A DNA stretch of 64,000 nt from Podarcis muralis (GCF_964188315.1 NC_135660.1:84754001-84818000); one strand, 5' to 3'. Shown: positions 16,128 to 51,489, numbered from the stretch's first letter. Notes: generated by a model not told the origin, from the letters alone. Made by a program: numbers and translations.

Positions 16128-16288
16128 ATGGCTGAAGAGTGTGTCTTCCTCTCCAAAGACCCTGAGTGTTCTGGAACATCCACAGCTGAGACCCCCACTC
16201 TTAAAGATCTAGAACAGCTCCTGAATTCTGGGAGGTCTTCCTGTAACCATGTTGATGAAGTATGGCCTAACCTTTTCTTAGGAGACCA
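16128..16288 (+). CDS. DUSP13A: DUSP13A-like copy 1, coding exon 1
   Basis: [53 protein letters not shown]; donor CA|GTAAGT; 161 nt. Confidence 0.93.
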
Positions 16289-17324
16289 GTAAGTATATCT
16301 CTGTGGAACAGCTCAGCATTTTTTTGGCAGTGCTTAAGAGCTCCGCCAACGTAACTACTGCAGCCAAGTCAATGCCCCTTCCAAGGAATGTGTCGTTCTG
16401 TGATCTGGTTGGGTCCAGTACCTTGTTATGCATGACTATACCTCATTTAAACCAATGGGGCATTCTGACACATAACCGGTGGTAGGATTGCACATCATCC
16501 TGGCTTCTTTGAGAAGACAGTCTTGCAATTAATTGTTACGCACCCGTAAGCAATTTATGTATTTTATTTCATGTGCATTCAGAATGCCACACAGAATCTG
16601 GAACAAAATGTTGGATTCTTCAGTGCATCACCTTTCTTTCCACCACCTAGTCCTTTAAAAAAAAAAAATTCTAACCCTCACAGTTGCAGTGACACATGGC
16701 TGTAGGCCATGCACTTGGTATATGAAAAAGGCGAAAGAGTTCAGCCAGTGTGGCTTCCGTCCCCTTCAGAGTGACCTAGTCCTCCCTTGTGACTTCTCAT
16801 TACCTTTGCCTGACTGTTTCGGTTGCTTTAATTGTCTAGCTCTGATTCCAGTGTAAACACACATCTAGACTTGTTTATTCATTCCCGGTAACCAATTATC
16901 TGTCACATTTCCGGTGAGGCTACTGGAACCCTAAACCTGACACCACAGTTGCTTCCAAGTCCATGGATGTACCATGATTCAGTGCCTAACGTAGGATTGG
17001 AATACCACTTGTATTTTAATGGTGAATTTTGGACACAATGGAGAGGTAAACAAATTTGGACTATCATAAAATATGCAGGAGGAAATGATTAATAACAAGA
17101 CCCACAAAACAGAGGACGGAGGTCCAAGAGATTCCTTGGAATCTTGTTTTTATGTTGTATGTTGGACTGTAAAATTTTAATCTGAAAAAAAAAAATGCAG
17201 TTCCTAACACCACAACATGGGGGTTTCCAACAAAGCTGAATGTTCAAATATTGAGGACAGGCAAAATAAAGCCCTTTGCCACACAGTACAAAGTTAAATT
17301 TTGGAATCTGCGCTAATAGAGGCA

Positions 17325-17560
17325 GTGACGGCATCCAACTTGAATGGCTTTAGAAGATGATCAGACAAATTCATGGCTACGGTGTTGTGCCATCAGTCTG
17401 AGACAGTATGATTCTGAATAACAATTGCTGAAAACCACAGGAGGGGAGAATGAAGTTGAGCTCAGATCCTGTGCTTCCCACAGACATCTAAGAGGCCATT
17501 GTGAGAACAGCGTGTTGGACTAGATGGGCCAGTGCCTTATTACAGCAGGCTCTTCTTATG
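17325..17560 (+). mobile_element. CR1 3' fragment (related pieces at about 15450, 25200 and 27950)
   Basis: GATGGCTTTA...GACAAATTCATGG...GGACTAGATGG motifs. Confidence 0.6.
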
Positions 17561-18251
17561 TTCTGAATATTCATTCATTAAATCTGTAGGCGCAGACCAT
17601 CGCCCAACTCAAAATAGTCCAGCATGAAAATCCCCAAACTCGGTTCCATGGGTGACTCTGAGTCAACTCCCTGGGGTAGTTTATTGTTGCACATTGTTTC
17701 CAAATTTATTTTTGTACATTGTTTTAATTGTCTGTTTTAACCATATTTGCACATCAGTTTCTAATGCTGTGTGTCCTCTATTTCAGAGGCTTCTACTCTG
17801 CAGCCTCTTATAGTTGTTTTAACCGCGAGTCTTTTAGTTCTTATGCTCTTACAGTTGTTTTAACTGCATGTTTTTATTTGTTTTTATCTGTTTTAATTAT
17901 CAGTTTTTATCCATCCATTATCCGTGTTTAATCTTGTATTTTATTCAGATGTTTTATCCTATGCTTGTTCCTTTGTCCTTATTTGCTCCAACATTTATCA
18001 GTTAAAAAAAAAAATCCTAACTGCTATTTTATTTATATGTTTGTTTGTTTGTTTTAAATCCTGGTCTGTGACCATAATAAAGTTCATTCATTCATTAAAT
18101 CTTACTGAAATCTTTGTTCCTTAATGTGGGCTATTTTCTTCATAGAATGTGAGAGGACCCAGACCACAAGTTAGAGCGGAAAGCCTGAAAGGAAAACAGG
18201 ACCCTTCTTGTGTCTGTCTGCCTCTCACTTTCTGTTTTGTCTTTTCTTCAG

Positions 18252-18469
18252 TGTTACGGCGCACAGCAGATTTGGTTTGTGGAAAATGGGCATTAGCCAT
18301 GTTTTAAATGCTGCACATGGCAAAATATTTTGCCACGAACCCCATGATTTTTACGGCACAACGATTGAATACTATGGTGTACCGGCCGATGACCTTCCTG
18401 ATTTTGATATGACTCCATATTTTTACCCCGCGGCAGAATTTATACATAAAGCCTTGACCACACCAGGAG
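18252..18469 (+). CDS. DUSP13A: DUSP13A-like copy 1, coding exon 2
   Basis: Acceptor CTTTTCTTCAG; [35 protein letters not shown]...GVPADDLPDFD...ALTTPG; donor G|GTAGAG; 218 nt. Confidence 0.95.
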
Positions 18470-18679
18470 GTAGAGAAGCAACATTCGTCACAAATGTCAA
18501 TATTATGTTGTGTTGGCAATTTGGTACGTCACTGCTATTTCTTTCTGGAGAGCTGGAAGTTAGGGGAGGATTGGCAGCTCTGGTGTTGCTGTTGGGTTTG
18601 TACTTTATAGTCTCATGGACTTAAATAGCAGATACTTAAGGTCATGTTTAACTCTCCCAGAGCAATAAATAGAATACAA

Positions 18680-19545
18680 TAATAATAATAATAACGATAA
18701 TAATAATATTTATACCCCGCCCATCTGGCTGGGTTTCCCCAGCCACTCTGGGTGGCTTCCAACAAAATATTAAAAATACAAGAAAACATCAGACATTAAA
18801 AACTTCCCTAAAGAGGGCTGCCTTCAGATGTCTTCTAAAAGTCAGGTAGTTCTTTATTTCCTTGACATCTGATGGGAGGACATTCCACAGGGCAGGCGCC
18901 ACTACCAAGAAGGCCCTCTGCCTGGTTCCCTATAACTTTGCTTCTCGCAGTGAGGGAACCGCCAGAAGGCTCTCGGAGCTGGACCTCAGTGTCCGGGCTG
19001 AACGATGGGGGTAGAGATGCTCCTTCAGGTAAACTGGGCCGAGGCCATTTAGGGCTTTAAAGGTCAGGACCAACACTTTGAATTGTGCTTAGAAATGGAC
19101 TGGGAGACAATGTATGCCTTTCAGGACTGGTTTTATGTAGTCCCAGGGGCCACTCCCAGTCACCAGTCTAGCTGCCGCATTCTGGATTAGTTGAAGTTTC
19201 TGAGTCACCTTCAAAGGTGTAGAGCACATTGCAGTAGTCCAAGCAGGAGACAACCAGAGCCTCTAGTGAGGCAGTCTGCGGGCAGGTAAGCTTGCATACC
19301 AGATGGAGCTGGTAGACACCTGCCCTGGACACAGAATTGACCTGCACCTCCATGGACAGCTGTGAGTGCAAAATGACTCCCAAGCTGTGCACCTGGTCCT
19401 TCAGGGACACAATTACCCCATTCAAGACCCCATTCATTTCATCAATTGCAACAGTACTATCCAATTGATTCTCCCAGCTCATAGGACTCCTAAATGAGAT
19501 TATGGCTACAGTGCTGGAAGGAGGCGGCCTGGGCTCCAATCCCAA
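18680..19545 (-). mobile_element. L2-clade LINE 3' portion in DUSP13A copy 1 intron 2
   Basis: Reverse-complement homology to 9858-10260; LKDQVHSLGVILHSQLSMEVQV...LDYCN; (ATT)n tail. Confidence 0.8.
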
Positions 19546-20216
19546 CCAATTTTACCCAGTAGTAAGTAAGTGAATTCAATGCTGGTTATGCCCAGGTAAG
19601 TGGGGTAATGATTGCAACCTGTTCACCATGCCAGTTTTGTTTTTGTTTTTTTATTTAAAAAAACTGAATAAGAAAAACAAACAATACACACAGAGAAAAC
19701 GAACAAACAGTAACAGGCTAATAAAAATTCGACACAAGGAGCTTTTGATAATAAAGTCAAAAGAAACATAACAAATCAGGGAGCGAATCAAATGGGTACA
19801 ATGATAAAATTGTAAATGGAGTATAAAACACAGTTTACATTGTGCAATAAATGAGAGAAAAAAGAAAGAGGTTTTGCCTGTTTATAGACACCACCAAATG
19901 AAACCATATTTTGAAGGAATTCACCTGTGTTTTACCTTGTGTTTTTGTTTTGCGAGTGTGGATTAAGCCCAAGAAGATCTCAATTAACCAAAACTTCACA
20001 CAAACTGTGTAGAGTAGAGCGCCACAATTTAGGTATAAATGAGAATAAGCTCCCCAGTTGGAGACTAAACTTATTCAGTATTACCGTAGCTGTTGGGATT
20101 AGAGGCAACAATTGTTAAAAGTACTTATTTAGGAAACATTTGAATTCTCTTTCTTTGGTAGTTTAAAATGGCACCTTTAAAGATGCTTTAAAAAACAACG
20201 TTTTCTTCATTTGCAG

Positions 20217-20440
20217 CTAAAATCTTCGTGCACTGCGCTGTGGGGATAAGCAGGTCGTCTTCGTTGGTGCTGGCATACCTCATGATTTACCATCGCTTCT
20301 CTTTGGTTAAAGCCATTCAGGCAGTGAAAGAACATCGGTGGATTTTCCCCAATCAAGGGTTCCTGAAGCAACTGAGAAATTTGGACATTCAGCTAAACAA
20401 AAAAAGCACTAAGCAAGAAAGCAAAGAAACAAATGCCTGA
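20217..20440 (+). CDS. DUSP13A: DUSP13A-like copy 1, coding exon 3 (catalytic motif HCAVGISRS)
   Basis: Acceptor TTCATTTGCAG; [23 protein letters not shown]...[12 protein letters not shown]...ETNA*; spliced CDS 603 nt (200 aa); AATAAA at 20611. Confidence 0.95.
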
Positions 20441-23236: not shown

Positions 23237-23397
23237 ATGGCTGAAGAGTGTGTCTCCCTCTCCAAAGACCCTGAGTGTTCTGGAACATCCACAGCTGAGA
23301 CCCCCACTCTTAAAGATCTAGAACAGTTCCTGAATACTGGGAGGCCTTCCTGTAGCCATGTTGATGAAGTATGGCCTAACCTTTTCTTAGGAGATCT
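23237..23397 (+). CDS. DUSP13A: DUSP13A-like copy 2, coding exon 1
   Basis: 7 nt differences from copy 1 exon 1 over 161 nt; donor CT|GTAAGT. Confidence 0.93.
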
Positions 23398-23853
23398 GTA
23401 AGTATACGTCCGTGGAACGGCTCAGCATTTTTTGGGCAGTGCTTAAGAGCTCCTCCAACGCAACTACTGCAGCCAAGTCAATGCTCCTTCCAAGGAATGC
23501 GTCATTCTGTGATCTGGTTGAGTCCAGTACCTTGTTATGCATGACTGTACCTCATTTAAAGCAATGGGGCATTCTGACACATGACTGGAGGAAATTGCAC
23601 CTTAACATGTTATCTGATTTTTGCAATACAGTCTTGCAATTAATTGTTAACGAGCCTGAAGCATTTTATCTTTTTTATTTTGTGCATTCAGGATGCCACA
23701 CAGAATCTGGAACAAAATGTTGGATTCTTGAATATATCATCTTACTTTTTCTTCCAAAAAGCCATTTCTAGCCCCCACAAGTTGCGATGAGACATGGCTG
23801 AAGGCTAAAGGGGCAAAAGAGTTCAGTCAGTATGGCTTCTGTACCCTTTAGAG

Positions 23854-24004
23854 CAGTGCTTTTTTCTGGGGGGGGATGCAGGGGGACGCATACCCCTAAA
23901 TATTTTGTGAATCTAAGTTTGGCCTCATTGAGGGGCAGTATTTCAATATGAGTAGGAAAATGAGAGTACCCCTAAACAGTTTTTTTAAAGAAAAAAAAGC
24001 ACTG
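23854..24004. mobile_element. hAT-like MITE specific to DUSP13A copy 2
   Basis: TIR CAGTGCTTTTTTT; TSD CTTTAGAG/CTTCAGAG; empty site CCCCTTCAGAG near 16765. Confidence 0.82.
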
Positions 24005-24081
24005 CTTCAGAGACCTAGTCCTCCCTTGTAGCTTCTCATTGCCTTTCCCTGGCTCTCTGGGTCATTTCAATTGCCTTGCTC

Positions 24082-24393
24082 TGGTGGCGCTGTGGGTTAA
24101 ACCACAGAGCCTAGGACTTGCCGATCAGAAGGTCGGCGGTTCGAATCCCTGCAATGGGTGAGCTCCTGCCAACCTAGCAGTTCAAAAGCACGTCAAAGTG
24201 CAAGTAGATAAATAGGTACCGCTCTGGCGGGAAGGTAAACGGCATTTCCGTGCGCTGCTCTGGTTCGCCAGAAGCGGCTTAGTCATGCTGGCCACATGAC
24301 CTGGAAGCTGTACGCCGGCTCCCTTGGCCAATAAAGCAAGATGAGTAGGTCACAACTGGACCTAATGGTCAGGGGTTCCTTTACCTTTACCTT
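24082..24393 (+). mobile_element. Sauria SINE, specific to DUSP13A copy 2 intron 1
   Basis: SINE head and tail present; absent from the paralogous site near 16845. Confidence 0.88.
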
Positions 24394-24949
24394 TAACTCC
24401 AGTGTAAAACCATGTCTTTATAGATCTGTCCAGTTCTGGTGAGGCTGAGCCCACAGACGTTTTGGGAGTAAGCAAGCCCAGCGAGCATTCTCAGGCTGAT
24501 GGTATCCAGGCAGGGATGGCAGTATTTCGGTCCCAGGTCAGGAACCATGAACTGGCAAACAAGGGCAAAAGACATGGAGAGATCACTGGGAGCAAACCAG
24601 GTATTCCAACAGATTCCTTGGTCTTTTTTTAGTAGGCATAGACCTGCCTACCTCCTCCTGGCTCTACTTGCTTCCCAAGGACCATAGCAATTTAAAGGGA
24701 CTGTGCTGCAGCCTGGAATCTAGCATGCCGCCATCTCGCTTCTATTTTCTGTTGGGTCCATTGTCCGTTGTTATGATCGGGTTTTGAGGAATAGGAGGCC
24801 CTTGGTGGCGAGGGCAGTGGTACCCTGAGGTTTATCTGGGCTACCGTCTCCAGGGAAAGTGGCTCAGAGGATTCTGTACTAGGGTCTTATTTAAATATTT
24901 CATTTATACTCTGCTTCTCTTCCAAGGGGCTCAAGATGGCCTGCACGAT

Positions 24950-25098
24950 TCTTCCCACTCCCCATTTTATCCTCCCAATAACCCAGTGGGGCAGGTTAAG
25001 GTTGAGAATTGGTGAATGGCCAAAGTCACCCAGTGGGCTACATAGCTAAGTGGGGATTTGAACCCTGGTCTCCCAGGTCCTAGCCTGACCCCCTAACC
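24950..25098 (-). mobile_element. Older tRNA-derived SINE (Squam3/MIR-like)
   Basis: Reverse-complement head GGAAGCCAGTGTGGTCTAGTGGTTAG and core. Confidence 0.6.
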
Positions 25099-25649
25099 AC
25101 TAGACCACACTGGCTTCCAAGTCCATTGATGCGCTTAACGGATTTGGTGCCTAACCCTAAAATTCAGGGACATCCAAGGAAGCCAGATGATGGAAGATTC
25201 AGGACAAAGTACTTCTTCACATAATAAGACATTAAATTATGGGATGGCTTTAAAAGAGAATTGGGCAAATTCATGGAGGACAAGGCTATCAATGGCTGTT
25301 AACCCTAATGGCTATGTTCTGCCATCCCAGTATAATTCTGAATATCAGTTGCTGGAAACCACAGAGGGGAGAATGAAGTTGAGCTCAGATCCTACTTCGT
25401 GCTTTCCAGAGACATCTAAGTGGCCAATGGGAGAACAGCATGTTGGACCAGATGGACCATTGGCTTATTCCAGAATGTTCATTCATTACATCATAATTGA
25501 ATTTTCTGTTCCTTAACGTGGGAGATTTTCTCCATACAATAAGTGGATCTGAGCCACAAATCAGAGGGAGAAGCCTGAAAGCAAAACAGGATTCTTTTCC
25601 TACCTGTTAAGTCTGCCTCTCACTTTCTGTTTCATTTTTCTCTATCCAG

Positions 25650-25867
25650 CGTTATGGCCCACAACAGATTTGGTTTGTGGAAAATGGGCATCAGCCATGT
25701 TTTAAATGCTGCACACGGCAAAATATTTTGCCAAGGATCCCACGAGTTTTATGGCACAACGATCGAATACTATGGTGTACCAGCCTTTGACCTTCCTGAT
25801 TTTGATATGACTCCATATTTTTACCCTGCGGCAGAATTCATACACAAAGCCTTGAACACACCAGGAG
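25650..25867 (+). CDS. DUSP13A: DUSP13A-like copy 2, coding exon 2
   Basis: Acceptor TCTCTATCCAG; [35 protein letters not shown]...PAFDLPDFD...ALNTPG; donor G|GTAGGG; 218 nt. Confidence 0.95.
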
Positions 25868-26143
25868 GTAGGGAAGTAACATGCGTCACAAATGTTCATA
25901 TTATGTTGTGCTGTGCTGGCAATTTGGGACTTCACTGCCATTTCTTTTGGAGAGCTGGAGATTGGGGAAAGATGTTCAGCTCTCTCATTGATTTGGGGTT
26001 TACTTGATGGCTGCCCTGTAGGGATCACTGAGCAGCTTTTGCCCTGTGCCTCTTCCCCGACCTTCTCTTTGTTTCCAGGCAGAGATTATTGGCTTCTTAA
26101 ATTCTCTGCCTACCTCCTGCTTCCATTTCTCTACTCATATGTA

Positions 26144-26385
26144 CAGTGGTACCTCGGTTTACATACGCTTCAGGTTACATACGCTTCAGGTTACAGACTC
26201 CGTCAACCCAGAAATAGTGCTTCAGGTTAAGAACTTTGCTTCAGAATAAGAACAGAAATTGTGCTCCGGCGGCGCGGCAGCAGCAGGAGGCCCCATTAGC
26301 TAAAGTGGTGCTTCAGGTTAAGAACAGTTTCAGGTTAAGTACGGACCTCTGGAACGAATTAAGTACTTAACCCGAGGTACCACTG
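26144..26385. mobile_element. Tigger-like MITE
   Basis: TIR and TA TSD. Confidence 0.85.
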
Positions 26386-26598
26386 TATGCTCATCTGGTT
26401 CCCATTTCCTTGTTATTTGTACATAGCTATAACATATTGAGGTTCCAGGTGTCTCCAATGCCGGTGTGTCATTATCTACCCTCCTCTCACATTATATATA
26501 AACACTGGAGTTCCTTATCACCTTGACATCACATTGCCACGACACATTGGAAACCATGTTTAAATCTTCTGTCCTTTGTCACTGTTCTTTTTCTGGAC

Positions 26599-26970
26599 AT
26601 GGGTGGCACTGTGGTCTAAACCACAGAGCCTCCTGGACTCACCAACCAGAAGGTCAGCAGTTCTAATCTGCGCAACAGGGTGAGCTCCCATTGCTCTTTC
26701 CCAGCTCCTGCCAATCTAGCAGTTCGAAAGCACACCAGTGCAAGTAGATAAATAGGTACCACTGCAGCAGGAAGGTAAACGGCGTTTCTGTGTGCTGTGG
26801 TTTCCATCATGGTGTCCTGTTGTGCCAGAAGCGGTTTAGTCATGCCGGCCACATGACCTGGAAATCTGTCTGTGGACAAACGCTAGCTTCCTCGGACTGA
26901 AAGCAAGATGAGTGCCGCAACCCCATAGTCGCCTTTGACTGGACTTAACCGTCCAGGGGTCATTTAACTT
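26599..26970 (+). mobile_element. Sauria SINE (second subfamily)
   Basis: Similarity to the other copies. Confidence 0.85.
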
Positions 26971-27472
26971 TGCCGTTTACTGTTCTTTTATGCCCAGGTG
27001 GCAAAAGAGCTGTGAGTTTTTATCACTGCTTGAGAAAAAACAATATAAGAAACCCTGTTGCCAAAAACTACTAGATTCACTGTTCTTTCAATCTTGTCCT
27101 AAGTACATTTTGAAACTGCAGTTTATCCCAGCACTGAAAATTCATCAGAATCCAACAAAGAAAACTGTTAAACGTGCGCACACACAAATACATACATACA
27201 GTGCTTTTTCTGCCAAACATTGATTTTAGCTAAACTGTGAAGTAAGCCCAAGAAGATTTCCATTAACTTGACACAAACAATGTAAAGTAGGGCCCCACAT
27301 TTAGGCATAAATGAAGATAATATCAGAATTGGGGACTAAATTTATCCAGTATTAATGTAACTGCAGAAAGTTAAATGTACCTGTTTCAGAAATGGTTGAA
27401 TTCTGTCTTCTCTGTACTTTAAAAATGCCATCTTTTAAGATGATTAAAAAATGTGGTTTACTTCATTTTCAG

Positions 27473-27660
27473 GCAAAATCTTAGTGCACTGCGCAGTGGG
27501 GATAAGCCGATCGTCTTCGTTGGTGCTGGCATATCTCATGATCTACCATCGCTTCTCTTTGCTTAAAGCCATTCAGGCAGTGAAAGAACGTCGGTGGATT
27601 TTCCCCAACCGAGGGTTCCTGAAGCAACTGAGAAATTTGGACCTTCAGCTCAGCAAATAA
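27473..27660 (+). CDS. DUSP13A: DUSP13A-like copy 2, coding exon 3
   Basis: Acceptor TTCATTTTCAG; [14 protein letters not shown]...[21 protein letters not shown]; spliced CDS 567 nt (188 aa). Confidence 0.95.
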
Positions 27661-28718: not shown

Positions 28719-29019
28719 TAGATCACTTTCCAGGACCCTTTGAACTCTATGATTCTATGATCTTCCATAACGATCTTCAGAGTACATAATAATATAATTC
28801 AACTCAAAAGAACTATTTTTTCCATTTCGAGGAAAAATAGGATGTTGATCTCCACTTGTGCTTATTGCATTTTGTGCTGCCGTGTCAGCAAAGGCTGTTC
28901 CCACATTAGGCATGGGGATGGGCAGGGGACGAAAAAGGGACATCTCTCAAAAGGCGCACCTGCTTCTCCCTGTCAAATGTCGAAAGGTAACTGGAGCTCA
29001 TTGGGGCTCTGCAACGACC

Positions 29020-29198
29020 ATGTATCATCGCATGACAACGGATGACCCCTTTCCAAAGACAACCGCCCCCTTTTGCAAAATGAACAGCCGCAGATCCGCC
29101 TCACCCTCCGTCCAAGAGTTGGAGCATGTGATGGACAGCTGCAGGATGGAATTAAATGAGATAGATGAAGTGTGGCCCAATCTTTATATAGGCAACAT
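29020..29198 (+). CDS. Third atypical DUSP paralog (DUSP13/26/29 family, CaaX-bearing), coding exon 1; start ATG uncertain (29020, 29032 or 29080)
   Basis: MYHRMTTDD...SPSVQELEHVMDSCRMELNEIDEVWPNLYIGN; donor AT|GTAAGT in phase 2, as in the paralogs. Confidence 0.88.
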
Positions 29199-30716
29199 GT
29201 AAGTGTGACCCGGAACGAAGCCGCGGCTTGAGCGTGGGGTAAAAGGTACTGTACAGCGATGTAATGTTATAACCAATGAATTCACATTGCTAACGGAGGA
29301 CAGATCTGTGCACGCTGAAGTTAAAGTCTGAAAAGAGTTTCCCTTGTTTTTCTCTGTCGTTCAACATGGGTGGGAATTCCTGGACAACCTTCCTAACAGA
29401 AAGCACATTACAAAAATCTGTATATGACTGGGGCAGGAACAGCACAGACAGTCCTATCACAGAGACACAAGATAATATATTTTATTATGTGCTAAAACTG
29501 AAAATCTAAATTCTAGCAAAGGAACCCACTTTCTTTGCCCAGAATACCTGTCCTATCTACACCCAAGTGATGCAAACCGCCCTCTGCATTTGGGGTGCCC
29601 AGTATGTCCTGTGTTAGATACAGATTTTTTAAAAAAAGAATTTACAGTTGGGTGAGAACAAGGTGTGATATCCAGACAGATGGAGAAAGATGCAAGGAAT
29701 GTAGACAAGGTATTCAAACTGAGAAATCTGCGGCCGAGTGAGGTAGCCTAGCAGAGTACAGAAATTCCAGTGGCTACTGAAACCTTATACTGGCGAATTT
29801 AAAATGCACGTCTTCAAGAAACATGAGCGGTGATGGACTTTCTAAATTGAAGGTTGAGTTTCTCAGGAACCCTAGCTGTGGGCCTGGTTACAGATTGTAT
29901 GTCTGAATATTCTATTGATTAGTTATATGTTTATGCACCAAGAATTTGCTCCTCTATCCATATGCAATTTACAAATACAGCTCATATTGTTTTATCCTGC
30001 TCTGTATTTTGAAAGTATAATCCTCTGGAGTGATTATCTGCATTTTATATTGGCAAATATACGGTGGATTAATTATACAGTTAGCATGCGCTTGTCAACC
30101 TTTGATGCATAAAAAAATCAGATCTGAACCCTGAGGTAGGAAATGGCATAGAGTATAATGTGCTCAACTGATCCCAACCTCTGCTCTTGAAAGGGATACG
30201 CAACCACTAGACTGAGCCTCTGTTTTCAAGAAAAGATGCTAGAGAGTTAAATGATTTAGATATCTGCAAGAAGTCACATGACTGAAGGCAGAAGTTCTGA
30301 GAAGCAAACACACTAGAGTCCAGTCCCGTCATGGCAACTGGCACATGTCATAATGTATCATTCTAAATTCCGGTGCAGATGGATTTCAGTTGATCCGAAG
30401 CCTACAGAAACTAAAGGGTAACTAAAGCCGTCTGCAAAAAAATAACATTCCGTGTTCTTGCAAATTGGATACAGCGTCATGTGACTGTAAGTTCTCCAAG
30501 TTACATTATCCCCTACCAAATTGTCTGGGTTGAGCAATCCTATACTCGCCGTTATCACAGAAATGCCACTGCTGCGTGCCTGTCTTTTCTGACGCCCACT
30601 CAATCCAGGATGGGAAGGCAGAGTCACCCACATGGTGAGTCAAAATGCAAGCAGCAAATGACTTTGGGATGATCAGAGCACTTCCCCAACAGCCCCGTCC
30701 AACACTGCAAAATATA

Positions 30717-31245
30717 CCGTATTTTTCGCTCTATAGGACGCACCCGACCATAGGACTCACCTTGTTTTATAGGGGGAGAACAAGAAAAAAAAATTCTCCC
30801 CTTCTCTGCTCAGCGCCCCTTCAGCAAAGCGGCAGGAGAAACGGAGCCCCTTCCACTTCTCCTCCTGCTTGGCTGAAGGGGCGCTGCACAGCTTTCCCTC
30901 TCTGCTGAAGTCAGGAGAGTCTTGCTCTCCTGGCTTCAGCAAAAGGAACCTGAAGCCTCCAGAGCGCAGCGGGAACTCGCGCTGCGCTCCGGAGGCTTCA
31001 GGCGGCTATCCCTGAAGCCTGGAGAGCGAGAGGGGTCAGTGCGCACCGACCCATCTTGCTCTCCAGGCTTCAGTGAAAGCAACGCGAAGCCCCCGGAGCG
31101 CAGAGGGAGCTCTCCCTCTGCGCTTCGGAGGCTTCGCATTGCTATCGCTGAAGCCAAGGAGCCTGCATTCGCTCCATAGGACGCACACATATTTCCCCTT
31201 CATTTTTGGAGGGGGAAAATGCGTCCTATAGAGCAAAAAATACGG
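30717..31245. mobile_element. Tc2/pogo-like non-autonomous element with internal long palindromes
   Basis: TIR CCGTATTTTTCGCTCTATAGGACGCA / TGCGTCCTATAGAGCAAAAAATACGG; TA TSD. Confidence 0.8.
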
Positions 31246-32403
31246 TACTCAATGATACTACCAGGCCCCCACTCCATCAGCTAGTATAGTACTCGACAGG
31301 ACTTGGAGCTGGGAAGCTGGAGACAATATTTCAAGCTCCAACAGTGGAAGGGAGAACTGTTAGGGCCCAAAAAGTTGGAGCACCTGGCACTCAAACCTCT
31401 GCTGCAGACGCCACAGAGGAGCTCCCTTATCACTCAAGCGCAGCAACAAACACATATGGCCATGGCGCATTAGTTCCCTATGCCCCAGTCCCATAGAATC
31501 GCAAACGTTGGAAGTTGGAAGGCACCCGAGGGTCATCTAGTCCAGCCCCCGGGCAATGCAGGAATCCCACATCATTTGGCTCCATTGTTGGCCACTTCCT
31601 GTTGCTAGCTATTAACAGCATATTTTGTATAAAGCTGTGCTATTTAAGATGTCCATGCAGCGCCTGCTATTGGTCAAAACGTCTCATGAGTGAGCAGCAA
31701 TAATTCATTAGGACCACATGTTCCAAGCTTGTTAAATAAATCATCCAGGTTCCTCTGATATTTGCCGCCTCAGCCTCTTATCGGAAAGAAGAGTTATACC
31801 CTGTCACTGAACCTTTCCCTTTGCAAGCTCCTAGACTATTTAATTCATCTGACCATTTAAAAGCTAGTGTTGGCCAGCATTCAGACAAATCCACTGTTAA
31901 TAGAATTAAGTAGATCTGACCACACTGAGGTCTACCCTATGGGATAGAAAATAGTACTTTAAAAAGAGTTATAAAAAAAAAGAAGTTTCCAAGAAGAAGC
32001 TACTGAGCTAGACTCCACTAGTTTAGCAACTAAAGGAACTCAGACTTGGTAGAGATCTGGAGTACTTGTCCCATTTGAGGGAGTTTATACTGTTTTTGCT
32101 ATACTCATTTGCAATCAGGTGCAGTCAGTTGCAGAAGAATCACACCCATTCTCTTTGAATCTCATATTCGTATGTATTTTGCATCTCCTATTATCTGTAT
32201 CTTTCCTTGGCCTTTTGTCATTGTAAAGGGTTTTTCTTGCTGCATTTTCTTGCTATATATCTTAATCTAATTTGTGTAACTTCCATTTGCCTCACTGCTT
32301 CCCTGTAGTTTACAACTGACTTGGACCAAACACAGACCCTCCAAGTGTCCCTATTTTCCAGAGACAGTCGCGGATTTACAGAATCTGTCCCAGTTTCTGA
32401 TTT

Positions 32404-32855
32404 ATAGAAATATAGAAATACTTTATTGTCACTGTACCACTTGTTTACAGTGAGATTAAACGAGCCCCCCTCCCCTCAATCTCTCAGTCCTTGTTACACT
32501 CTGTGTGCTGTCATATGACCACCAACCCCAAACGTCAGCTGCAATGTTGCTGTCTTCCATTCAGCAGCCTCACGCCCCACAGGTAGAAACTGTTCTTTAA
32601 CCTGTTGGTGCAGCTTATCATGCTTCTATATCTCCTGCCCGAGGGCAGGAGATTAAAAAGGTGCTGGCCAGGGTGTGAGTCATCCATGAGAATGTTCCCT
32701 GCGATAACATCTAGCGGACTCAGGGCACAGCCCATGATATCGTGTGCTGTCTTCACCACCCTCTGTAGGGACTTTCTGTCAAACCAGCGTACCACACCGT
32801 AATACAGTATGAGAGAACACTTTCTATTGTGGACCAATAGAAGGAAATAATCAGT
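32404..32855 (-). mobile_element. Rex1/Babar LINE 3' end inserted in a hAT-like MITE (32334-32928)
   Basis: DRKSLQRVVKTA...DDSHPGQHLFNLLPSGRRYRS...NRLKNSFY; (TTTCTA)-type tail; empty MITE site at about 62087 (TGATTT|GATCCCGG). Confidence 0.8.
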
Positions 32856-34088
32856 TGATTTGATCCCGGAATGTCCTGCTTTTCCTTAGGACATCCCTAT
32901 TTTCATCAGAGAAATGTTGGAGGGTATGTAAACAGCAATTGTGTTTTCCGTGAATTGCCGTTCGTTCCAATTCAGCGGTAAAAAGTGTGTTTTCCAGGGG
33001 AAATCAGCGGAACAATTGCAAAACTGCTCGGAACCACGTCTAGAAAGGATGGGACAAAGGGGAAACTGCTATCTAAGACCAACCGTTTCGGCATCTGAAA
33101 AAAGAACCTCTAACTACAAATCCTTCTGTCTCAATAAATCTTATTAGTGTTTACGAAGCTGCAGGACTCTCATAAGTTGCCACAAAACTGCCTCACTGGA
33201 ATACGTCAGTATTAATTTATGAAATATAGATTTCTGATTCGGTGATTCATACTACTACAGGCAGATCTGCCTTATTGGAATTTGATCCTACCCTACACTC
33301 TATTTAAACTTTCCCTGACACTATCAATAGGACAGAAAGAGATGCTGAAAGCACAACCCTTTCAGATCAGTGGCAATCATTTTGAAATAAGTATCTGATG
33401 AGATCCTGCCAGGGGAAGCTTACGCAATCCACTGGATTGTCGTAACATCAGGAACATACCCTGTCCATATGTTCAAGGAGCCACAAATGAAAGAAAGCTT
33501 TCCCCGTTATGGAAATAAAACAACAAATCCAAACAGCGATTCTGTTAGTGCAGCCTGTCTTCATTCTGAAGACGTAAACCTAGTATAAAATCGGCACATT
33601 TCACATGCAACATCTGTTTCAAAAGGAAGGATGGCGACTTTCTGTGTGTGTGCCCTTCCTGTCCAGATGAAATCATGATTACATCTCTATGAAAACATTA
33701 TCCACAGCCCTCGGCTCAGAAAACCGTTCATCTGTGCCAAGTGCAGCTCGGCAGTAGTTCACGGCAGGACACAGAGAATGCCCTGCGCTAATGAAACCAC
33801 ATGGTGATATCTGTGCCCTTCGAATGTGATTGTCCATACTGGAGGAGGTTTATCCAGATAATCGGTTCAAAGTGTGCCCTCTATTGCATCAGCCTTTACA
33901 GGAAAATCCTGCAAATCTCGATTAAGAGACCATTGTGCTATATACAAAAGATCAGTCACAGGCTTCCGAAGAAGTTGAAGCCCAGATATCTTAACATGGC
34001 TCTCTTGCCCTTTATGATTTCAGAGGGGGAAAGTCCAGTCACAGTTTCTCATCCTAACCTACCTCACAGGGTTGTTGTGAGGAGTCAA

Positions 34089-34428
34089 AGGTGACTATGG
34101 GGTGCAGCGCTCATCTCGCTTCAGGCTGAGGGAGCTGGAGTTTGTCCAAAGACAGCTTTCCGGCTCATGTGGCCAGCATGACTAAACCGCTTCTGGTGCA
34201 ACGGGACACTATGACGGAAACCAGAGCGCACAGAAACACCGTTTACCTTCCTGCCATGGCGGTACCTATTTATTTACTCGCACTAGCGTGCTTTCAAACT
34301 GCTAGGTTGGCAGGAGCTGGGAGAGAGCAACAGGAACTCACCCCATCGCAGGGATTCGAACCGCTGACCTTCCTGATCAGCAAGCCCAAGAGGTTCAGTG
34401 GTTTAGACCACAGCGCCACCCACGTCCC
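34089..34428 (-). mobile_element. Sauria SINE
   Basis: Similarity to the other copies. Confidence 0.85.
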
Positions 34429-34934
34429 ATGTGAGGATAACATGCATGGAAGAACCACATACACCACACTTAGAACATGGGACCAAAACATCAGGAGAAG
34501 CACTTAAAAAAAAGGTTGGTTGGGGGCAAGGAATTCATGTTTCAGAGGCGTATTTAAATAGCAGTTTTCTAAACAGGTATCTGAAAGTAGGCAGGGATGA
34601 TTCTTATCAAGCCTCTGCTGGCAGGCAGTTCCACAGGACAGGGCCTGCCACAGGAAAGGCTTGGCCCACCAGACCTCAGAAAAAATGAAGATGCAGCTTT
34701 GGGTCTGGGAGCTGTGGCAATAATGATAATGATATTTCTCTAGGAATTTGAAGTGGGATTAGCAGTTGCGTTGCCTCCTGAAAGGAATGCATATGCACTC
34801 ACTATGCTCTTCTTACATATTTGTTTAAATCAATAATCAATATCCAACACTTTCTCATTCATCGGAAACTAAGCCCTGTATCACTGTTTCCACCATGAGA
34901 AGATGAGCCAGTGTGGCATAATGGAGAGAGTGTT

Positions 34935-35303
34935 TTTGGTTTTGGTTTTATAATTTTTGTTAAATTTCTGTTTTACGTTTTAGGATATTCACTTAAACAA
35001 CCTTAAAATATCGATGACTTCCCTTCCTCTCTTTCCGTGGTTCATTTTGCACAACATAAATCCCTGCATATTTTACATAAAATAAACCATTCAGTATTCC
35101 ATTATCACATCCATCAAAACTTATTTACACTGTTGAATTTATCTTAATGCTGCCAGCGTTTTCAAATAGACACAATTTCCCCCCATATATTCAATAAACA
35201 TTTCCCAATCTTCTCTAAACGTATGTTCTTCTTGTTCTCTTATTCTATATGTTAGATCTGCAAGCTGCGCATATTCCATCAGTTTAAGTTGCCATTCTTC
35301 TTG
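34935..35303 (-). mobile_element. L1-type 3' fragment inserted into a tRNA-derived SINE
   Basis: EEWQLKLMEYAQLADLTYRIRE; 16-bp TSD TAATGG(A/T)GAGAGTGTT; SINE head at ~34904 and body from ~35320. Confidence 0.82.
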
Positions 35304-35481
35304 TAATGGTGAGAGTGTTGGACCTGGGAGATCAGGGTTCAAATCCCCACTCATAGCTTAACCTACCTCACAAAGTTGTTGTAAGGGTGAATCTGGGAGG
35401 AGGAGAACCCTGTAAGTCACCTGGAGATGCTTGGAAGATAAAGATGGTATAAAGGGAAACGGACCACTGACCAGTAACACT

Positions 35482-35724
35482 GAGCCAGTGTGGTGTAGTG
35501 GTTAAGAGCAGTAGTCTCGTAATCTGGGGAACCGGGTTCGCGTCTCCGCTCCTCCACATGCAGAGCTGCTGGGTGACCTTGGGCCAGTCACGCTTCTCTG
35601 AAGTCTCTCAGCCCCACTCACCTCACAGAGTGTTTGTTGTGGGGAAGGAAGGGAAAGGAGAATGTTAGCCGCTTTGAGACTCCTGAAGGGGAGTGAAAGG
35701 TGGGATATCAAATCCAAACTCTTC
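35482..35724 (+). mobile_element. tRNA-derived SINE (Squam3-like)
   Basis: GAGCCAGTGTGGTGTAGTGGTTA A-box head, GGTTCG B-box; near-identical copy at 41508. Confidence 0.8.
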
Positions 35725-35726
35725 CA

Positions 35727-36059
35727 ATCCATTCGGTCCAGTCATGACCGACTCTGGGGTTGCGGCGCTCATCTCGCTTTATTGGCCGAGGGAGCCAGCG
35801 TACAGCTTCCGGGTTATGTGGCCAGCATGACTAAGCCGCTTCTGGCGAACCAGAGCAGCACACGGAAACGCCATTTACCTTCCCACCGGAGCAGTACCTA
35901 TTTATCTACTTGCACTTTGACATGATTTCAAACTGCTAGGTTGGCAGGAGCAGGGACTGAGCAACGGGAGCTCACCCCGTCGCAGGGATTCGAACCGCCA
36001 ACCTTCTGATCGGCAAGTCCTAGGCTCTGTGGTTTAACCCACAGCGCCACCCACGTCCC
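35727..36059 (-). mobile_element. Sauria SINE
   Basis: Similarity to the other copies. Confidence 0.85.
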
Positions 36060-36146
36060 AAAGATGGTATATAAATGTAATAAATAAATAAGGGCATGGG
36101 ATTCATTTCTGCTCACCTGCCCACTTTCATATCTGTTTCCCGGCAG

Positions 36147-36364
36147 CACGGCGGCACACAACAAGGAAGAGCTAAGGAAACGGGGTATCACTCACATACT
36201 GAATGCCGCACACGCTGCCTGGGGAAGCAAAGGAAACCAAACATTCTACGGACCAGAGTTCCATTACTATGGAATAGCAGCAGAAGACTCCCCAGACTTT
36301 GACCTCAGCATACACTTCCGCCCTGCCTCCGAATTCATCACCAAAGCCCTAAGTGTACCAAATG
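36147..36364 (+). CDS. Third DUSP paralog, coding exon 2 (absent from the ORF track because it has no start codon)
   Basis: Acceptor TGTTTCCCGGCAG; [72 protein letters not shown]; donor G|GTGAGT; 218 nt, same phases as the paralogs. Confidence 0.92.
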
Positions 36365-37055
36365 GTGAGTGCCTTGGGATGGAGCAATGGGGAAGTTTCT
36401 GAAACAACAATGGGATATTAGCTCCGCCCCAGGCATGATGGAGAACAGCAACAACCGGGAAAAGGTAGACAGAACATTTTACAAGGACAGGAAGAAACAC
36501 CACGGACAGAATTGCCATACACAGGAAGAACAAGGATATAGTTTGAGTGCCTCTCTTGCAGTTTTATAAATCATTTAATGTGTCAACACAAATAGAAGTT
36601 ATTAATATTGCCGTTGTTGTATAAGGGATTATTATTTTGACCGGAATGTAATTGAAATTAATAAGATTTTAGAACGCAGAAGTAAAGAAAATCATCAAAC
36701 CATCCATTCTAGCACGTGGGGGGCCACCTAAATTATATAATTTGGTATTTGAACAATTGGTGTTCATAATTGTATTATAATTTGGCATTGTTATAATGAA
36801 GCTATTATTGGACTGCAATTGAAAACTAATAAAAAAAAACCATTATCAAATGGTGGGTGCCTGCCCTGGTGGAACCGCTGCACTGATGTTTTAGGTATTA
36901 GCAGCAGCATAGCATGGGATGCTGGTGTCCGGGGCAGACAAGCAACCATTTTGAGATAGGTCAGACTGAGAGACAAAGTGAATGAGTGGCCCAAGGTCAC
37001 CCAGTGAGCTTCAGAGCCACTTGACAATTTGGATTGCTTTAATACAAATTAAAAA

Positions 37056-37413
37056 AAGGTAAAGGTACCCCTGCCCGTACGGGCCAGTCTTGACAGACTC
37101 TAGGGTTGTGCGCCCATCTCACTTAAGAGGCTGGGGGCCAGAGCTGTCCAAAGACACTTCCGGGTCACGTGGCCAGCGTGACAAAGCTGCATCTGGCGAG
37201 CCAGCGCAGCACACGGAAACGCCGTTTACCTTCCCACCAATAAGCGGTCCCTATTTATCTACTTGCACCCGGGGGTGCTTTCGAACTGCTAGGTTGGCAG
37301 GCGCTGGGACCGAGCAGCGGGAGCGCACCCCGCCATGGGGATTCGAACCGCCGACCTTTTGATCGGCAAGCCCTAGACGCTGAGGCTTTTACCCACAGCA
37401 CCACCCGCGTCCG
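37056..37413 (-). mobile_element. Sauria SINE
   Basis: Similarity to the other copies; AAAGGTAAAGGT tail. Confidence 0.85.
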
Positions 37414-37511
37414 TATTTAATACAAATTAGGAACCCCCAAAATCCCCTACTGGAAGAGCTCAAAGGAGTTCCCAGTTGCTCTCTTCTTAAACCATTTCAT
37501 CTCCGTTCCAG

Positions 37512-37723
37512 GAAAGATCTTGGTCCACTGCATTCTAGGCAGAAGCAGATCAGCAGCCCTGGTTCTGGCTTACCTCATGATCTGTCAGAATTTCTCCCTG
37601 GCTGACGCCGTCAGAAAGGTCCTGCAGAATCGAGCCATCTCCCCGAACCGAGGGTTCCTGAAACAGCTGCAAGACTTAGATCTGGAGCTACGGTACAAGA
37701 TCAGGCTGTGTCAGCTTCTGTAA
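37512..37723 (+). CDS. Third DUSP paralog, coding exon 3 (HCILGRSRS; ends RYKIRLCQLL*)
   Basis: Acceptor CTCCGTTCCAG; GKILVHCILGRSRSAALVLAYLM...[11 protein letters not shown]...CQLL*; spliced CDS 609 nt (202 aa from 29020). Confidence 0.93.
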
Positions 37724-38146
37724 CGTGAAGAAGAAAGCAAAACGGCAAAGTGACAACATCTGACAGAGAACTCGGTTTCCGCTGCCAATCTCAGCAATTA
37801 AGCTTGAGGCTGCGTTATTAATCTTGACAGGAATTTTGAATGCTTAGTTTGGGAGCGGACCTTGACATCTAGAACATCTAGATGCTGGTTAGGTGCTTGA
37901 ATTTTCTGGATCTCTTTAAGGGAGATTGAATTTGAAGCTTATAAGATTGAGAAGGGGCCACAGTGCCCCCATAGAGCATCTCACATGCAGCTTTCAAAGT
38001 GCTTTCAGATTTTTCAGAGCGCTCACATATAGCATCTCACTAATCCTGGCTTACCACAACTTTGCAAAGATAAGTCATTATATTTAGACAGAAATGTATA
38101 AGATTCAGGTGGTGGTCGTGGTGGTCTGACGCAGTCGAAATATATA

Positions 38147-38387
38147 CACTGGTACCTTGGGTTAAGTACTTAATTTGTTCCGGAGGCCCGTTCTTAAGCT
38201 GAAACTGTTCTTAACCTGAAGCACCACTTTAGCTAATGGGGCCTCCTGCTGCCGCTGCGCCACCAGAGCACGATTTCTGTTCTCATCCTGAGCAAAGTTC
38301 TTAACCCGAGGTACTATTTCTGGGTTAGCGGAGTCTGTAACCTGAAGCATATGTAACCTGAAGTGTATGTAACCCGAGGTACCACTG
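38147..38387. mobile_element. Tigger-like MITE
   Basis: TIR and TA TSD. Confidence 0.82.
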
Positions 38388-38624
38388 TATACAAATTAAA
38401 AAATAAAAAATTGTCCAGTAGCACCTTAGAGACCAACTAAACTTGTTCTTGGTATAAGCTTTCATGTTGCTACTGAACAATTTTTTTAATGTATAAGATT
38501 GTACAAGTAAGGAGCTTTTTGAACCCTAACTGCTGGAAAGCCCTTTGCGCTGAATTAATAGTTATCTAAAGAACGGGAATGCATTTAGATCTCAAATTGT
38601 AATGTGTTACTGGGGATGGATTTT

Positions 38625-39000
38625 TTTTTAATGGACAAAATTATAATCATAAATAAATAACAGTAAAAATGTGCACCCCACCACCGAGACCGTTGTAACT
38701 ATCCAACCTCCCAAAATTTCAACACCTCTTGCGGTGGTTTTACCGCCTTTCCGTTTTAACAGTACAAATTCTACAAACACCTTCCAGATCTCCTCAAAAT
38801 CATTTCTCCTGTGTATTCCCCATCTTACCTTAATGGCACATGTTAATTTATCATTAATAGCAATATCCCACACCTCTTTATACCATTCTTCCATTTTATA
38901 TTCTCCTTGCCCCTTCCACTTCCTAGCTATCATAATTCGTGCAGCTGTCAATAAATTTGTGAGCAAGTTCTTCACAGCCTGTGAACCTTCCACCCCATCG
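38625..39000 (-). mobile_element. L1-type ORF2 3' fragment
   Basis: LLTAARIMIARKWKG...EEWYKEVWDIAIND. Confidence 0.8.
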
Positions 39001-39321
39001 TAAATTGATAATAATGCTACCTCTGGACTTTCGTCCAGCTTTCACCCAGTGATTTCTGTTATCTCCTTAAACACTTTTTTGCAATTTTTTTTTTAATGTA
39101 CATATTTACATCCCTACCACACGTGAACATAGTGCCCGGTTTCCTGGCATCCCCTCCAACACAACACTGAATATTCCTTGTCTATTTGATTTAATCTGAC
39201 TGGTGTTAAATACCGGGTGTGGGTAGATTTCTGTGGAAATACAGGGCTGGTCCTTCCATGAGGTAGTGAGGTGGCCACCCACCTCAGGTGGCATCAGTAA
39301 GATGACAGAGCTGCGAGTGTC

Positions 39322-39950
39322 ATGCAGCCTGCGTTGTGCCACCAAAGGCTAGGCACACATTCGTGGCTTAAAAGGCAGCGAGTTCATTTCCCCCTACTGC
39401 ATTTCAAGTTGCATTTGCCCTTGCTGCAAACACACACAAGAGCGGACACGAAAGTTTTCATCCAAGGCACATTACCTGCCTGGTTTCGCTGTGCCTGGCA
39501 CTGTCCCCTGTCCCAGTTGCTCCAGGAACATATCTGGGAAGAAATGGCTGCTTTGGATGCCTTCCTTTTCTATCGCATCGAAAGGGAAATCCTTCTGGAT
39601 CAAGATAAGGGAATGTCAGGGAACGTGCTGAGGAGGGCTGCACTGAGGAGGAACGGTGGGAACCTCCCCCTGCTCCTGGATCTTCCCAGGAGCAAGAGGA
39701 CAGTATAGCTTTGGAACAGTGGTTTGCAGAGGGGCATAGTTCAGAAGGCAGAAGCTGGGAAATACTGGATGGGGAACAGCTAGGTGAAGAAATACGGGGA
39801 GAGAGAGGGTTAACAGATTCACTGTCTCTGGAAAGCATTCCTCCACTCTCCCCAAGGTCAAGAAGAGCTGAGAAAGTGGCAGAACAGAAAGCACACAAAG
39901 CACAGAGGGTACAAACTCAGATTTCAACATGTAGAAGTGACGTGGATTAA
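39322..39950 (+). other. Candidate frameshifted upstream coding exon, possibly the N-terminal extension of a long DUSP13B isoform
   Basis: Two overlapping open frames (39322-39708 and 39609-39950) in non-repeat-looking sequence, joinable by one indel. Confidence 0.4.
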
Positions 39951-49115: not shown

Positions 49116-49276
49116 ATGAGCCATGCTGGAAACAGCTCCTCCAAGAATCAAAACTCAGAAAGTCGAAGCCGTTATGAGACACCAGCACTTTCTGAATTGC
49201 AGAGGCTAGTTTGGAGCAGAGGAGGATCCGACAACCATGTGGATCAAGTCTGGCCCAACCTCTACCTTGGAGACGC
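49116..49276 (+). CDS. DUSP13B: DUSP13B-like (TMDP-like), coding exon 1 of the short form; exon may begin at the 49071 acceptor
   Basis: MSHAGNSS...YETPALSELQRLVWSRGGSDNHVDQVWPNLYLGDA resembles DUSP13B YQPPTLASLQRLLW...NHIDEVWP as recalled; donor GC|GTAAGG; 161 nt. Confidence 0.88.
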
Positions 49277-49554
49277 GTAAGGAAATGGAAGGATTGCATC
49301 TTGTTACTTACCAGTCAGAAGGAGAGCAGAAGGTTAAAAATCCTATAAAATAGCAGCAAACAAACTGGGATCTCAACATCCAAATCCCACAAAATAGACT
49401 AGTATAAACCGGTTCTGTAAACCAACTTTCTATCAGAAACATGGACAAATTAAAACCGACATAACCTTTAAATGCTCATTTGAGAAGGGAAAAACACAGA
49501 TCAAGCTAAGTACAACTAAAATATAATATTACAATTAAATACAATTAAAACATA

Positions 49555-49777
49555 CAGTGGTACCTCGGATTATGAACTTCTAGAGGTCCGTTCTTAACCT
49601 GAAACGGTTCTTAACCTGAGGTACCACTTTAGCTAATGGGGCCTCCCGCTGCCGCTGCACGATTTCTGTTCTCATCCTGAGGTAAAGTTCTTAACCCAAG
49701 GTCCTACTTCCAGGTTAGCGGAGTCTGTAACCCAAAGTGTGTGTAACTCAAGGTGTTTGTAACCTGAGGTACCACTG
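49555..49777. mobile_element. Tigger-like MITE
   Basis: TIR and TA TSD. Confidence 0.85.
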
Positions 49778-50295
49778 TAAAATTGCTTTACATAAAACTA
49801 TTACATTTTGTGAAATTTAAATGTTCAGATCCCAACTTGTTTGCACACACATACAAAGTCCCTCCACTGCCAAGGAAAACCTCTTTTGCTCTCTGTCGCA
49901 GACACATACATGACCTTTGGGAAGCAGGTGAGATGACTCTAGGACCCTGTCTGAACCCTCATGCCTCCTTCCCCAAATCCAGCAAACTCAGTGCCTGAGC
50001 ACCCTTTGTGCACCCCTAAATCTGCCCCTGTTGGCCTCAACATTGGGGACCCACCTGCCCTAAATATTTTACTGTATTAGGGAGGCTGTAGGGACCTGGG
50101 CGCCTCAGAGTTGGCGCCTATGCCTTGCCTTATGGGTGGGGCAGCCCTGGGTGAAAAGGGACAGTCCTGGATTTACAGAAGCCACTCCCGGTTTCTGATT
50201 TGATCCTAGAACGTCTCACCTGTCCTTAGGACGTCCCTATTTTCATTGGATAAATGTTGGAGGGTATGAGGCGATGAGGTGAGTAAGGGCAATGT

Positions 50296-50329
50296 AATAG
50301 TAATAGTAGTAGTAGTAGTAGTAGTAGTA

Positions 50330-50377
<48 letters not shown>
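50296..50377. repeat. Compound (AGT)n(AAT)n microsatellite at an L2 tail
   Basis: Direct reading. Confidence 0.95.
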
Positions 50378-50444
50378 TATTTATACCCCACCCATCTGGC
50401 TGGGTTTCCCCAGTCACTCAGAGATTTTACTAGTTGGGCCAAGG

Positions 50445-51470: not shown

Positions 51471-51489
51471 TTTAAAAAAACAACAACAT

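Follow-up and report, generated by a model that had tools for sequence, protein, structure and literature searches.

A stretch of 64,000 nucleotides from the wall lizard Podarcis muralis (GCF_964188315.1 NC_135660.1:84754001-84818000; the whole of it is called the window here) contains, at positions 29,020 to 37,723, a gene that an initial annotation described as a third, divergent member of the DUSP13 family of dual-specificity phosphatases (DUSPs), ending in a CaaX box (CQLL) of the geranylgeranylation type. The question raised by this locus is whether we are dealing with a recent lizard copy of DUSP13A, with a duplicate in decay, or with a phosphatase group of its own that carries a working lipid anchor. 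We hold with good confidence that the gene encodes a real, transcribed and competent DUSP of a separate group, whose C-terminus is a working CaaX box that is most likely geranylgeranylated by geranylgeranyltransferase type I (GGTase-I). On the larger scale, it is probable that the gene represents an ancestral vertebrate fifth member of the DUSP13A/DUSP13B/DUSP26/DUSP29 group, being a geranylgeranylated, membrane-anchored DUSP of which the CaaL box (X = Leu) was kept for more than 400 million years in ray-finned fish (in both teleost copies), coelacanth, lungfish, amphibians and non-avian reptiles, and which was lost twice, in birds and in mammals.

The features of the gene are given below (positions are counted from the first nucleotide of the window).

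28912-29019, + strand: in-frame upstream extension of 36 codons (MGMGRGRK...), with the start used in the model XP_028584939.2 of the National Center for Biotechnology Information (NCBI)
29020-29198, + strand: coding part of exon 1; donor GT at 29199
29199-36146, + strand: intron 1 (6.9 kb), with repeats at its 3' end
36147-36364, + strand: exon 2 (218 nucleotides); acceptor AG at 36145-6, donor GT at 36365; encodes ITHILNAAH and the general-acid Asp (AAEDSPDFD)
37512-37723, + strand: coding part of exon 3; acceptor AG at 37510-1; encodes the P-loop, the C-terminal helix, the basic stretch RYKIR and the CaaX box
37526-37552, + strand: P-loop HCILGRSRS, in exon 3
37709-37720, + strand: CaaX box CQLL (Cys codon at 37709-37711)
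37721-37723, + strand: stop codon TAA, directly after CQLL
37724-37986, + strand: 3' untranslated region (UTR), minimum extent, from RNA contigs covering 37528-37986

The three exons with canonical GT/AG splice sites and the intact phosphatase of 202 residues that had been proposed initially were all recovered: joined, the exons amount to 609 nucleotides and give an intact open reading frame (ORF) that ends in RYKIRLCQLL. The translation is an exact match to the last 202 residues (37-238) of XP_028584939.2 (Podarcis muralis, 238 residues), which means that the gene was already modelled by NCBI, under the name "dual specificity protein phosphatase 13A-like". Though the ORF stands, the Met at 29020 does not hold as its only start. 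Upstream of 29020 the frame is open to an ATG at 28912 (238 residues), Zootoca has a Val at the position of Met1 of the 202-residue form, and an ATG at 29080 (MNSRR..., 182 residues) is the start common to the squamates inspected, with an MN(T/I).. start common to Anolis, Pogona, Sceloporus, Tiliqua and Salvator. The extension at 28912-29019 is probably 5' UTR or a non-conserved start. There are three candidate start codons (giving 182, 202 and 238 residues) and the C-terminus is the same whichever of these is used.

A tblastn search of the protein against the window yields four tandem paralogs on the + strand (g1 to g4), of which the CaaX gene is g3. Outside the window, g3 has homologs in squamates, tuatara, turtles, a crocodilian, salamanders, frogs, coelacanth, lungfish, bichir, sturgeon, gar and many teleosts; the Zootoca ortholog is 94% identical. 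An IQ-TREE phylogeny was obtained for 70 domain sequences from which the tail columns had been removed, so that the CaaX trait itself cannot drive the tree. It contains a g3 clade with full support (100/100) consisting of 26 bony-vertebrate CaaX proteins and 5 shark proteins without CaaX, and separate groups for DUSP13A (including g1 and g2), DUSP26, DUSP13B (including g4) and DUSP29. In a second tree, with five mammalian DUSP13A proteins added, the g3 clade is supported at 100/99 and all 21 DUSP13A proteins form one clade (90/85). Forcing mammalian DUSP13A among the lobe-finned/tetrapod CaaX proteins is rejected by the approximately unbiased (AU) test (difference in log-likelihood 81, p-AU 1.7e-5). 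Placing it as sister to the whole CaaX clade is borderline (p-AU 0.053), an arrangement that would not make mammalian DUSP13A and the CaaX gene orthologs.

Similarity scores and gene order were compared as well. Against human structures, proteins of the g3 clade score about equally to DUSP13A, DUSP26 and DUSP29 (165-178 bits), and over the human paralogs DUSP13A, DUSP13B, DUSP26, DUSP29 and VHR the scores run from 159 to 178 without a standout counterpart, in line with the earlier remark that human DUSP13A, DUSP13B, DUSP26 and DUSP29 are not known to carry such a box. Sauropsid DUSP13A proteins score 216-251 bits to human DUSP13A, and 183-201 to the next best. The order DUSP13A, CaaX gene, DUSP13B seen in the window is found again in teleosts, sturgeon and paddlefish (there in fused public models). 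Judged by these comparisons, the CaaX gene is an orthology group of its own within jawed vertebrates, dating at least to their common ancestor. The membership of the DUSP13 family proposed at first is thereby retained, but "divergent" in the sense of a lineage-specific copy is not, as the tree makes the gene an ancient paralog. A recent, lizard-specific divergent copy of DUSP13A can be dismissed given the orthologs from sharks to reptiles, and an ortholog of mammalian DUSP13A of which the CaaX box was lost in mammals is ruled out by the tree, the AU test, the bit scores and the synteny.

The C-terminal motif was followed through a wider FastTree phylogeny, in which the g3 clade counts 118 rows, 112 of them from bony vertebrates. 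A C-a-a-X terminus is present in 106 of these 112 models. The remaining six seem to be exceptions through fusion, extension, truncation or an alternative model: two are fused to a neighbouring gene, one runs past an intact LCPIL (P0066), one is without the usual tail and two are alternative Ensembl models (for one of which the same species also has a model ending in CaaX). Among the 106 CaaX rows the a1 position is occupied by 18 different residues, a2 is Leu (68), Ile (31), Met (3), Val (2) or Phe (2), and X is Leu (100), Ile (2), Gln (2), Val (1) or Phe (1). The Cys stands exactly 22 residues past a conserved PN motif in 101 of the 106; the eight residues before it include on average 3.3 Lys/Arg and almost no acidic residues, and in 99 rows there is no second Cys nearby that could serve for palmitoylation. 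Moreover, the box is kept in both teleost duplicate lineages. The P. muralis tail agrees with the GGTase-I rule (Cys at -4, an aliphatic a2, and Leu where the rule has Leu/Ile/Met/Phe at X), and its CQLL, preceded by basic residues and directly followed by the stop, is as first reported; the pattern is conserved across bony vertebrates.

Some variation in the tails was observed within and around the clade. Within lizards, the tail is CQLV in P. raffonei and CQLQ, with an X of the farnesyl type, in both Anolis and Sceloporus, and two record versions of P. muralis itself differ (CQLL in one, CRLL in the other). The six shark orthologs (P0042, P0049, P0051, P0061, P0065 and P0004) have longer tails without CaaX, though five of them have a Cys at or beside the end (YCSTCC, TFC, SYC, SDC); this may be another lipidation signal, and the CaaX box may have been gained in bony vertebrates or lost in sharks. 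A Cys as the final residue is also seen in DUSP13A of birds, crocodilian and turtle (KDC, IGC, RGC), and not in DUSP13A of lizard, amphibian, fish or mammals. Isolated CaaX-like ends that appeared in the wider family search (P0150, P0219 and P0233) belong to unrelated clades or odd models and were treated as chance.

Because of the residue pattern, because the small GTPase Rap1B, a known GGTase-I substrate, has CQLL at its end as well (PMC7958859, which bears out the earlier statement on this point), and because in yeast a CQLL reporter is prenylated by human farnesyltransferase (FTase) and, for about half, by human GGTase-I (PMC11152559), we take the tail to be a working CaaL box, with polybasic residues as the second signal. 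That a lipid is attached, which lipid this is, where the protein sits on the membrane and what its substrates are, are all things that we infer. Following this reading, Cys199 (202-residue numbering) would receive an isoprenoid, which, since X = Leu, would most likely be a 20-carbon geranylgeranyl group from GGTase-I. The usual CaaX processing enzymes would next cut off the last three residues and methylate the C-terminus so exposed. The lipid and the upstream basic residues would then hold the phosphatase on the inner membrane face, with the plasma membrane as the most likely site (as for Rap1 and K-Ras4B), and the membrane-held enzyme would dephosphorylate membrane-proximal substrates.

A number of observations weigh against this proposal, of which the first concern the lipid. 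Human GGTase-I modified the CQLL reporter for only about 50% at a low enzyme level, while human FTase also modifies it, and did so fully in yeast (PMC11152559), meaning that the lipid could be farnesyl or a mixture; the CQLQ of the iguanian orthologs (Anolis and Sceloporus) likewise predicts farnesyl. It might thus be argued that the box is real but carries farnesyl or a farnesyl/geranylgeranyl mixture, as in RhoB, or in K-Ras under FTase inhibition, in which case the affinity of the protein for membranes and the compartment it occupies would not be those of the Rap1-like picture. We consider this unlikely, though it deserves to be kept in mind: X is Leu in 100 of the 106 orthologs, a Leu in that position is the classical determinant for GGTase-I, and with the very same four residues Rap1B is a substrate of this enzyme (PMC7958859).

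Further counter-evidence comes from the fold and from the sharks, and here the properties of the enzyme have to be given. The Pfam domain DSPc (PF00782) covers residues 55-187 (E = 1e-25, 90.5 bits against a cut-off of 33.5). In an alignment of 43 family members Cys119, Arg125, Ser126 and Asp87 (182-residue numbering) are invariant and His118 is nearly so; with its catalytic His-Cys pair, the Arg-Ser of the P-loop and the general-acid Asp in place, the protein should be an active phosphatase. The AlphaFold2 model built from the same 43-sequence alignment has a predicted local distance difference test (pLDDT) value of 92.4 and a predicted template modeling (TM) score (pTM) of 0.90, and with Foldseek it matches TMDP/DUSP13B, DUSP13A, DUSP26, DUSP29 and VHR (2gwo, 5xjv, 5gtj, 2y96 and 1vhr) at TM scores of 0.78-0.95. 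The protein should be a catalytically competent small dual-specificity phosphatase with the VHR/DUSP13/DUSP26/DUSP29 fold. In the AlphaFold2 model, however, the last helix (residues 159-181 of the 182-residue form) extends into the tail (the final residues having a lower confidence), whereas prenyltransferases bind an extended tail. In addition, the shark orthologs lack the motif, from which it follows that CaaX is not essential to the enzyme as such.

These points could suggest that the terminal C-x-[LI]-L is kept for a reason other than a lipid (for instance the packing of the helix or contacts within a dimer, a redox-sensitive Cys, or a degron or binding motif at the C-terminus) and that the protein is soluble like its paralogs. 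The placement of the tail in the last helix, the shark orthologs that work without the motif and the inferential nature of the lipidation all fit such an explanation. Nonetheless we regard it as quite improbable. A Cys fixed at four residues from the stop, with a1 free, a2 aliphatic, X Leu and a basic stretch in front, is what a prenyltransferase requires and is hard to explain otherwise; furthermore, none of the 106 CaaX-ending models has residues beyond the motif (the sole continuing model, P0066, being counted as an exception).

The last point against the proposal concerns expression. We aligned RNA contigs from two runs, and raw stranded RNA-seq reads from two more runs, to positions 35900-39400. 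One contig of the X1 run (299 nucleotides, depth 3) lies on 36189-36362 and then on 37511-37634, and thereby crosses the exon 2/3 junction (36364/37512) that had been predicted. Additional contigs (X1 records 4 and 5, X5 record 14) span the stop codon and the 3' UTR up to about 37986. Of the raw reads, the few that fall on the exons have their first mate on the - strand, which in a standard stranded library indicates RNA from the + strand. The gene is real and transcribed in Podarcis muralis, with the exon 1/2 junction (29198/36147) being predicted. Nevertheless the RNA support is thin (a depth of about 1-3 and a single junction, between exons 2 and 3). Such a low depth with one junction is also what would be seen for a silent or decaying duplicate of which the ORF is intact in the wall lizard only through recent ancestry. 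We deem this very improbable in view of the intact ORF and catalytic residues, the existence of a spliced RNA contig, the identity to Zootoca given above and the orthologs throughout reptiles, amphibians and fish; in the true pseudogenes of birds (see below), on the other hand, there are stops and frameshifts, and the Gly of the P-loop and the Cys of the CaaX box are gone.

Two other signals were seen in the RNA data. In all four runs the RNA depth over the blocks 35900-36133, 36953-37420 and 38123-38473 is enormous, with numerous variants and loose ends; the blocks are interspersed repeats, lying in intron 1, within intron 2 and beyond the gene's 3' end, respectively. At 38591-39058, about 0.9-1.3 kb beyond the stop codon, there is a low and consistent + strand signal (first mate on -), which could be a longer 3' UTR of the CaaX gene or a separate transcript.

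Where, then, is the gene in birds and mammals? No bird or mammal protein was found in the CaaX clade of the wider FastTree phylogeny. For birds, we inspected the DNA downstream of DUSP13A in four species, which together span the three main branches of living birds. In the crane, remains of all three exons are seen between DUSP13A and DUSP13B (L001 15861-19680): a stop replaces the Trp of DEVWP, exon 2 carries an insertion, the P-loop Gly has become Arg, and exon 3 has two stops, a frameshift and a Trp in place of the CaaX Cys. This last change speaks for the working box proposed above, as the motif decays where the gene is dead. Relics with differing stops, frameshifts and active-site damage are also present in a rhea (L003 17073-21388), a pheasant (L004 17720-18841) and a passerine (L005 15285-18948). 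The lesions are mostly lineage-specific, though the P-loop Gly-to-Arg change is common to crane and passerine, and a change of DEVW to (x)EEW is common to three of the relics. The CaaX gene is a pseudogene in all four birds examined. In the blackbird, one protein model (P0100) has exon 1 of the relic spliced onto DUSP13A.

For mammals a probable loss had been put forward initially, and this is supported in that the gene was not found in the mammals checked and the AU test rejects mammalian DUSP13A as its ortholog. In the echidna no relic was recognisable in the 10 kb downstream of DUSP13A, and in a rodent none was present between DUSP13A and DUSP13B. In the opossum (called genes only) DUSP13A is directly followed by a 204-residue DSPc gene at 5.5 kb distance. 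The bird loss is an addition to the mammal loss predicted earlier, with pseudogenes remaining in birds. As crocodilians and turtles keep the gene, the losses in birds and mammals are separate events.

Comparison with known systems puts the gene closest to its tandem neighbour DUSP13A (MDSP), with which it shares the locus, the three exons, the intron phases, the 218-nucleotide middle exon, about 50% identity and the fold (TM about 0.9 to 5xjv). The two differ in the P-loop (HCILGRSRS against HCAVG(V/I)SRS) and at the C-terminus, where g3 has CaaX and the basic stretch and DUSP13A is without CaaX in every lineage seen. Moreover they form separate clades, and no functional mammalian or avian ortholog of g3 was found in our searches. 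DUSP26, DUSP29 (DUPD1) and DUSP13B (TMDP) belong to the same subfamily and share the fold, with near-equal bit scores (159-178) between g3 and the human proteins, yet each has its own clade and, unlike g3, none ends in CaaX.

With respect to architecture, g3 most resembles the PRL phosphatases (PTP4A1-3), which are small Cys-based phosphatases too and have a polybasic stretch followed by a C-terminal CaaX box; in PRLs this anchors the protein to membranes, as it would in g3. There is no specific sequence relationship: among 56 PDB sequence matches at E <= 1e-10 no PRL chain occurs, the top matches being DUSP13A, DUSP26, DUSP29, DUSP13B and VHR. As g3 is not a PRL by sequence, the likeness is convergent. 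PRL boxes are of the farnesyl type (X = Q or M), and PRL P-loops are without Ser/Thr after the Arg. Rap1B and other CaaL small GTPases have the identical CQLL with preceding basic residues but are unrelated in fold and function, so only the targeting signal is in common. The small atypical DUSPs DUSP15 (VHY) and DUSP22 (JSP-1) are membrane-bound via an N-terminal myristate on Gly2, whereas the lipid of g3 would be a C-terminal isoprenoid. To our knowledge, lipid anchoring among atypical DUSPs is limited to such N-myristoylation, and we know of no prenylated Cys-based phosphatase outside the PRLs.

Full-text literature searches returned no description of a CaaX box on a DUSP13-like protein and no name for the orthology group, and no such gene is mentioned in the main text of the PRENbase paper. 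An annotation of the gene exists, but its rank as a separate and ancient paralog, the strictness with which the CaaL box is kept and the double loss all appear to be new. If the proposed history is true, a membrane-proximal dephosphorylation function would have been dispensable, or taken over, in the two endothermic lineages. Studies of small atypical DUSPs rest almost wholly on the human and mouse genes. The present gene adds to the DUSP13 cluster a further, unnamed member, predicted to bring its own membrane anchor and widespread in fish, amphibians and reptiles. It occurs in zebrafish and Xenopus, where a knockout is feasible, and is absent from mammals and, as a working gene, from birds. 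Through this group one may learn, from a natural case, how tethering to a membrane affects an otherwise ordinary DUSP catalytic domain; it is also a clean case of two separate gene losses. It also exposes an annotation problem that a proper gene name would fix.

Public names for the gene are indeed of the kind that had been expected (a LOC or "DUSP13-like" entry), being 13-like, 13A-like, 26-like or 29-like. They are inconsistent as well, with the same gene called 13-like, 13A, 26-like, 29-like or even "Slingshot homolog 2-like", and many public models at the locus fuse DUSP13A, the CaaX gene and DUSP13B. The other members of the cluster in the window are the following.

16128-20440, + strand: g1, DUSP13A ortholog, 200 residues, exact match to XP_028584952.2; ends in KETNA, no CaaX
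23237-27660, + strand: g2, tandem duplicate of DUSP13A, 188 residues, exact match to XP_028584951.2; ends in LQLSK, no CaaX
49116-54946, + strand: g4, DUSP13B/TMDP ortholog, 196 residues, middle exon of 221 nucleotides; ends in RGALA, no CaaX

The three C-termini confirm that the box is particular to g3 among the paralogs of the window, as the initial annotation had it. The intron phases of g3 are the same as those of g1 and g2. The 218-nucleotide middle exon, claimed as common to the neighbouring paralogs, is shared by g1, g2 and g3 but not by g4. Searches of the window with the SAMD8 region of a rodent (tblastx) and with DUSP29 proteins (tblastn) detected neither SAMD8 nor DUSP29. The DUSP13A duplicates g1 and g2 are 89% identical at the protein level and both have intact ORFs, though g2 stops earlier (188 against 200 residues) and has FD at the general-acid position where g1 has DD.

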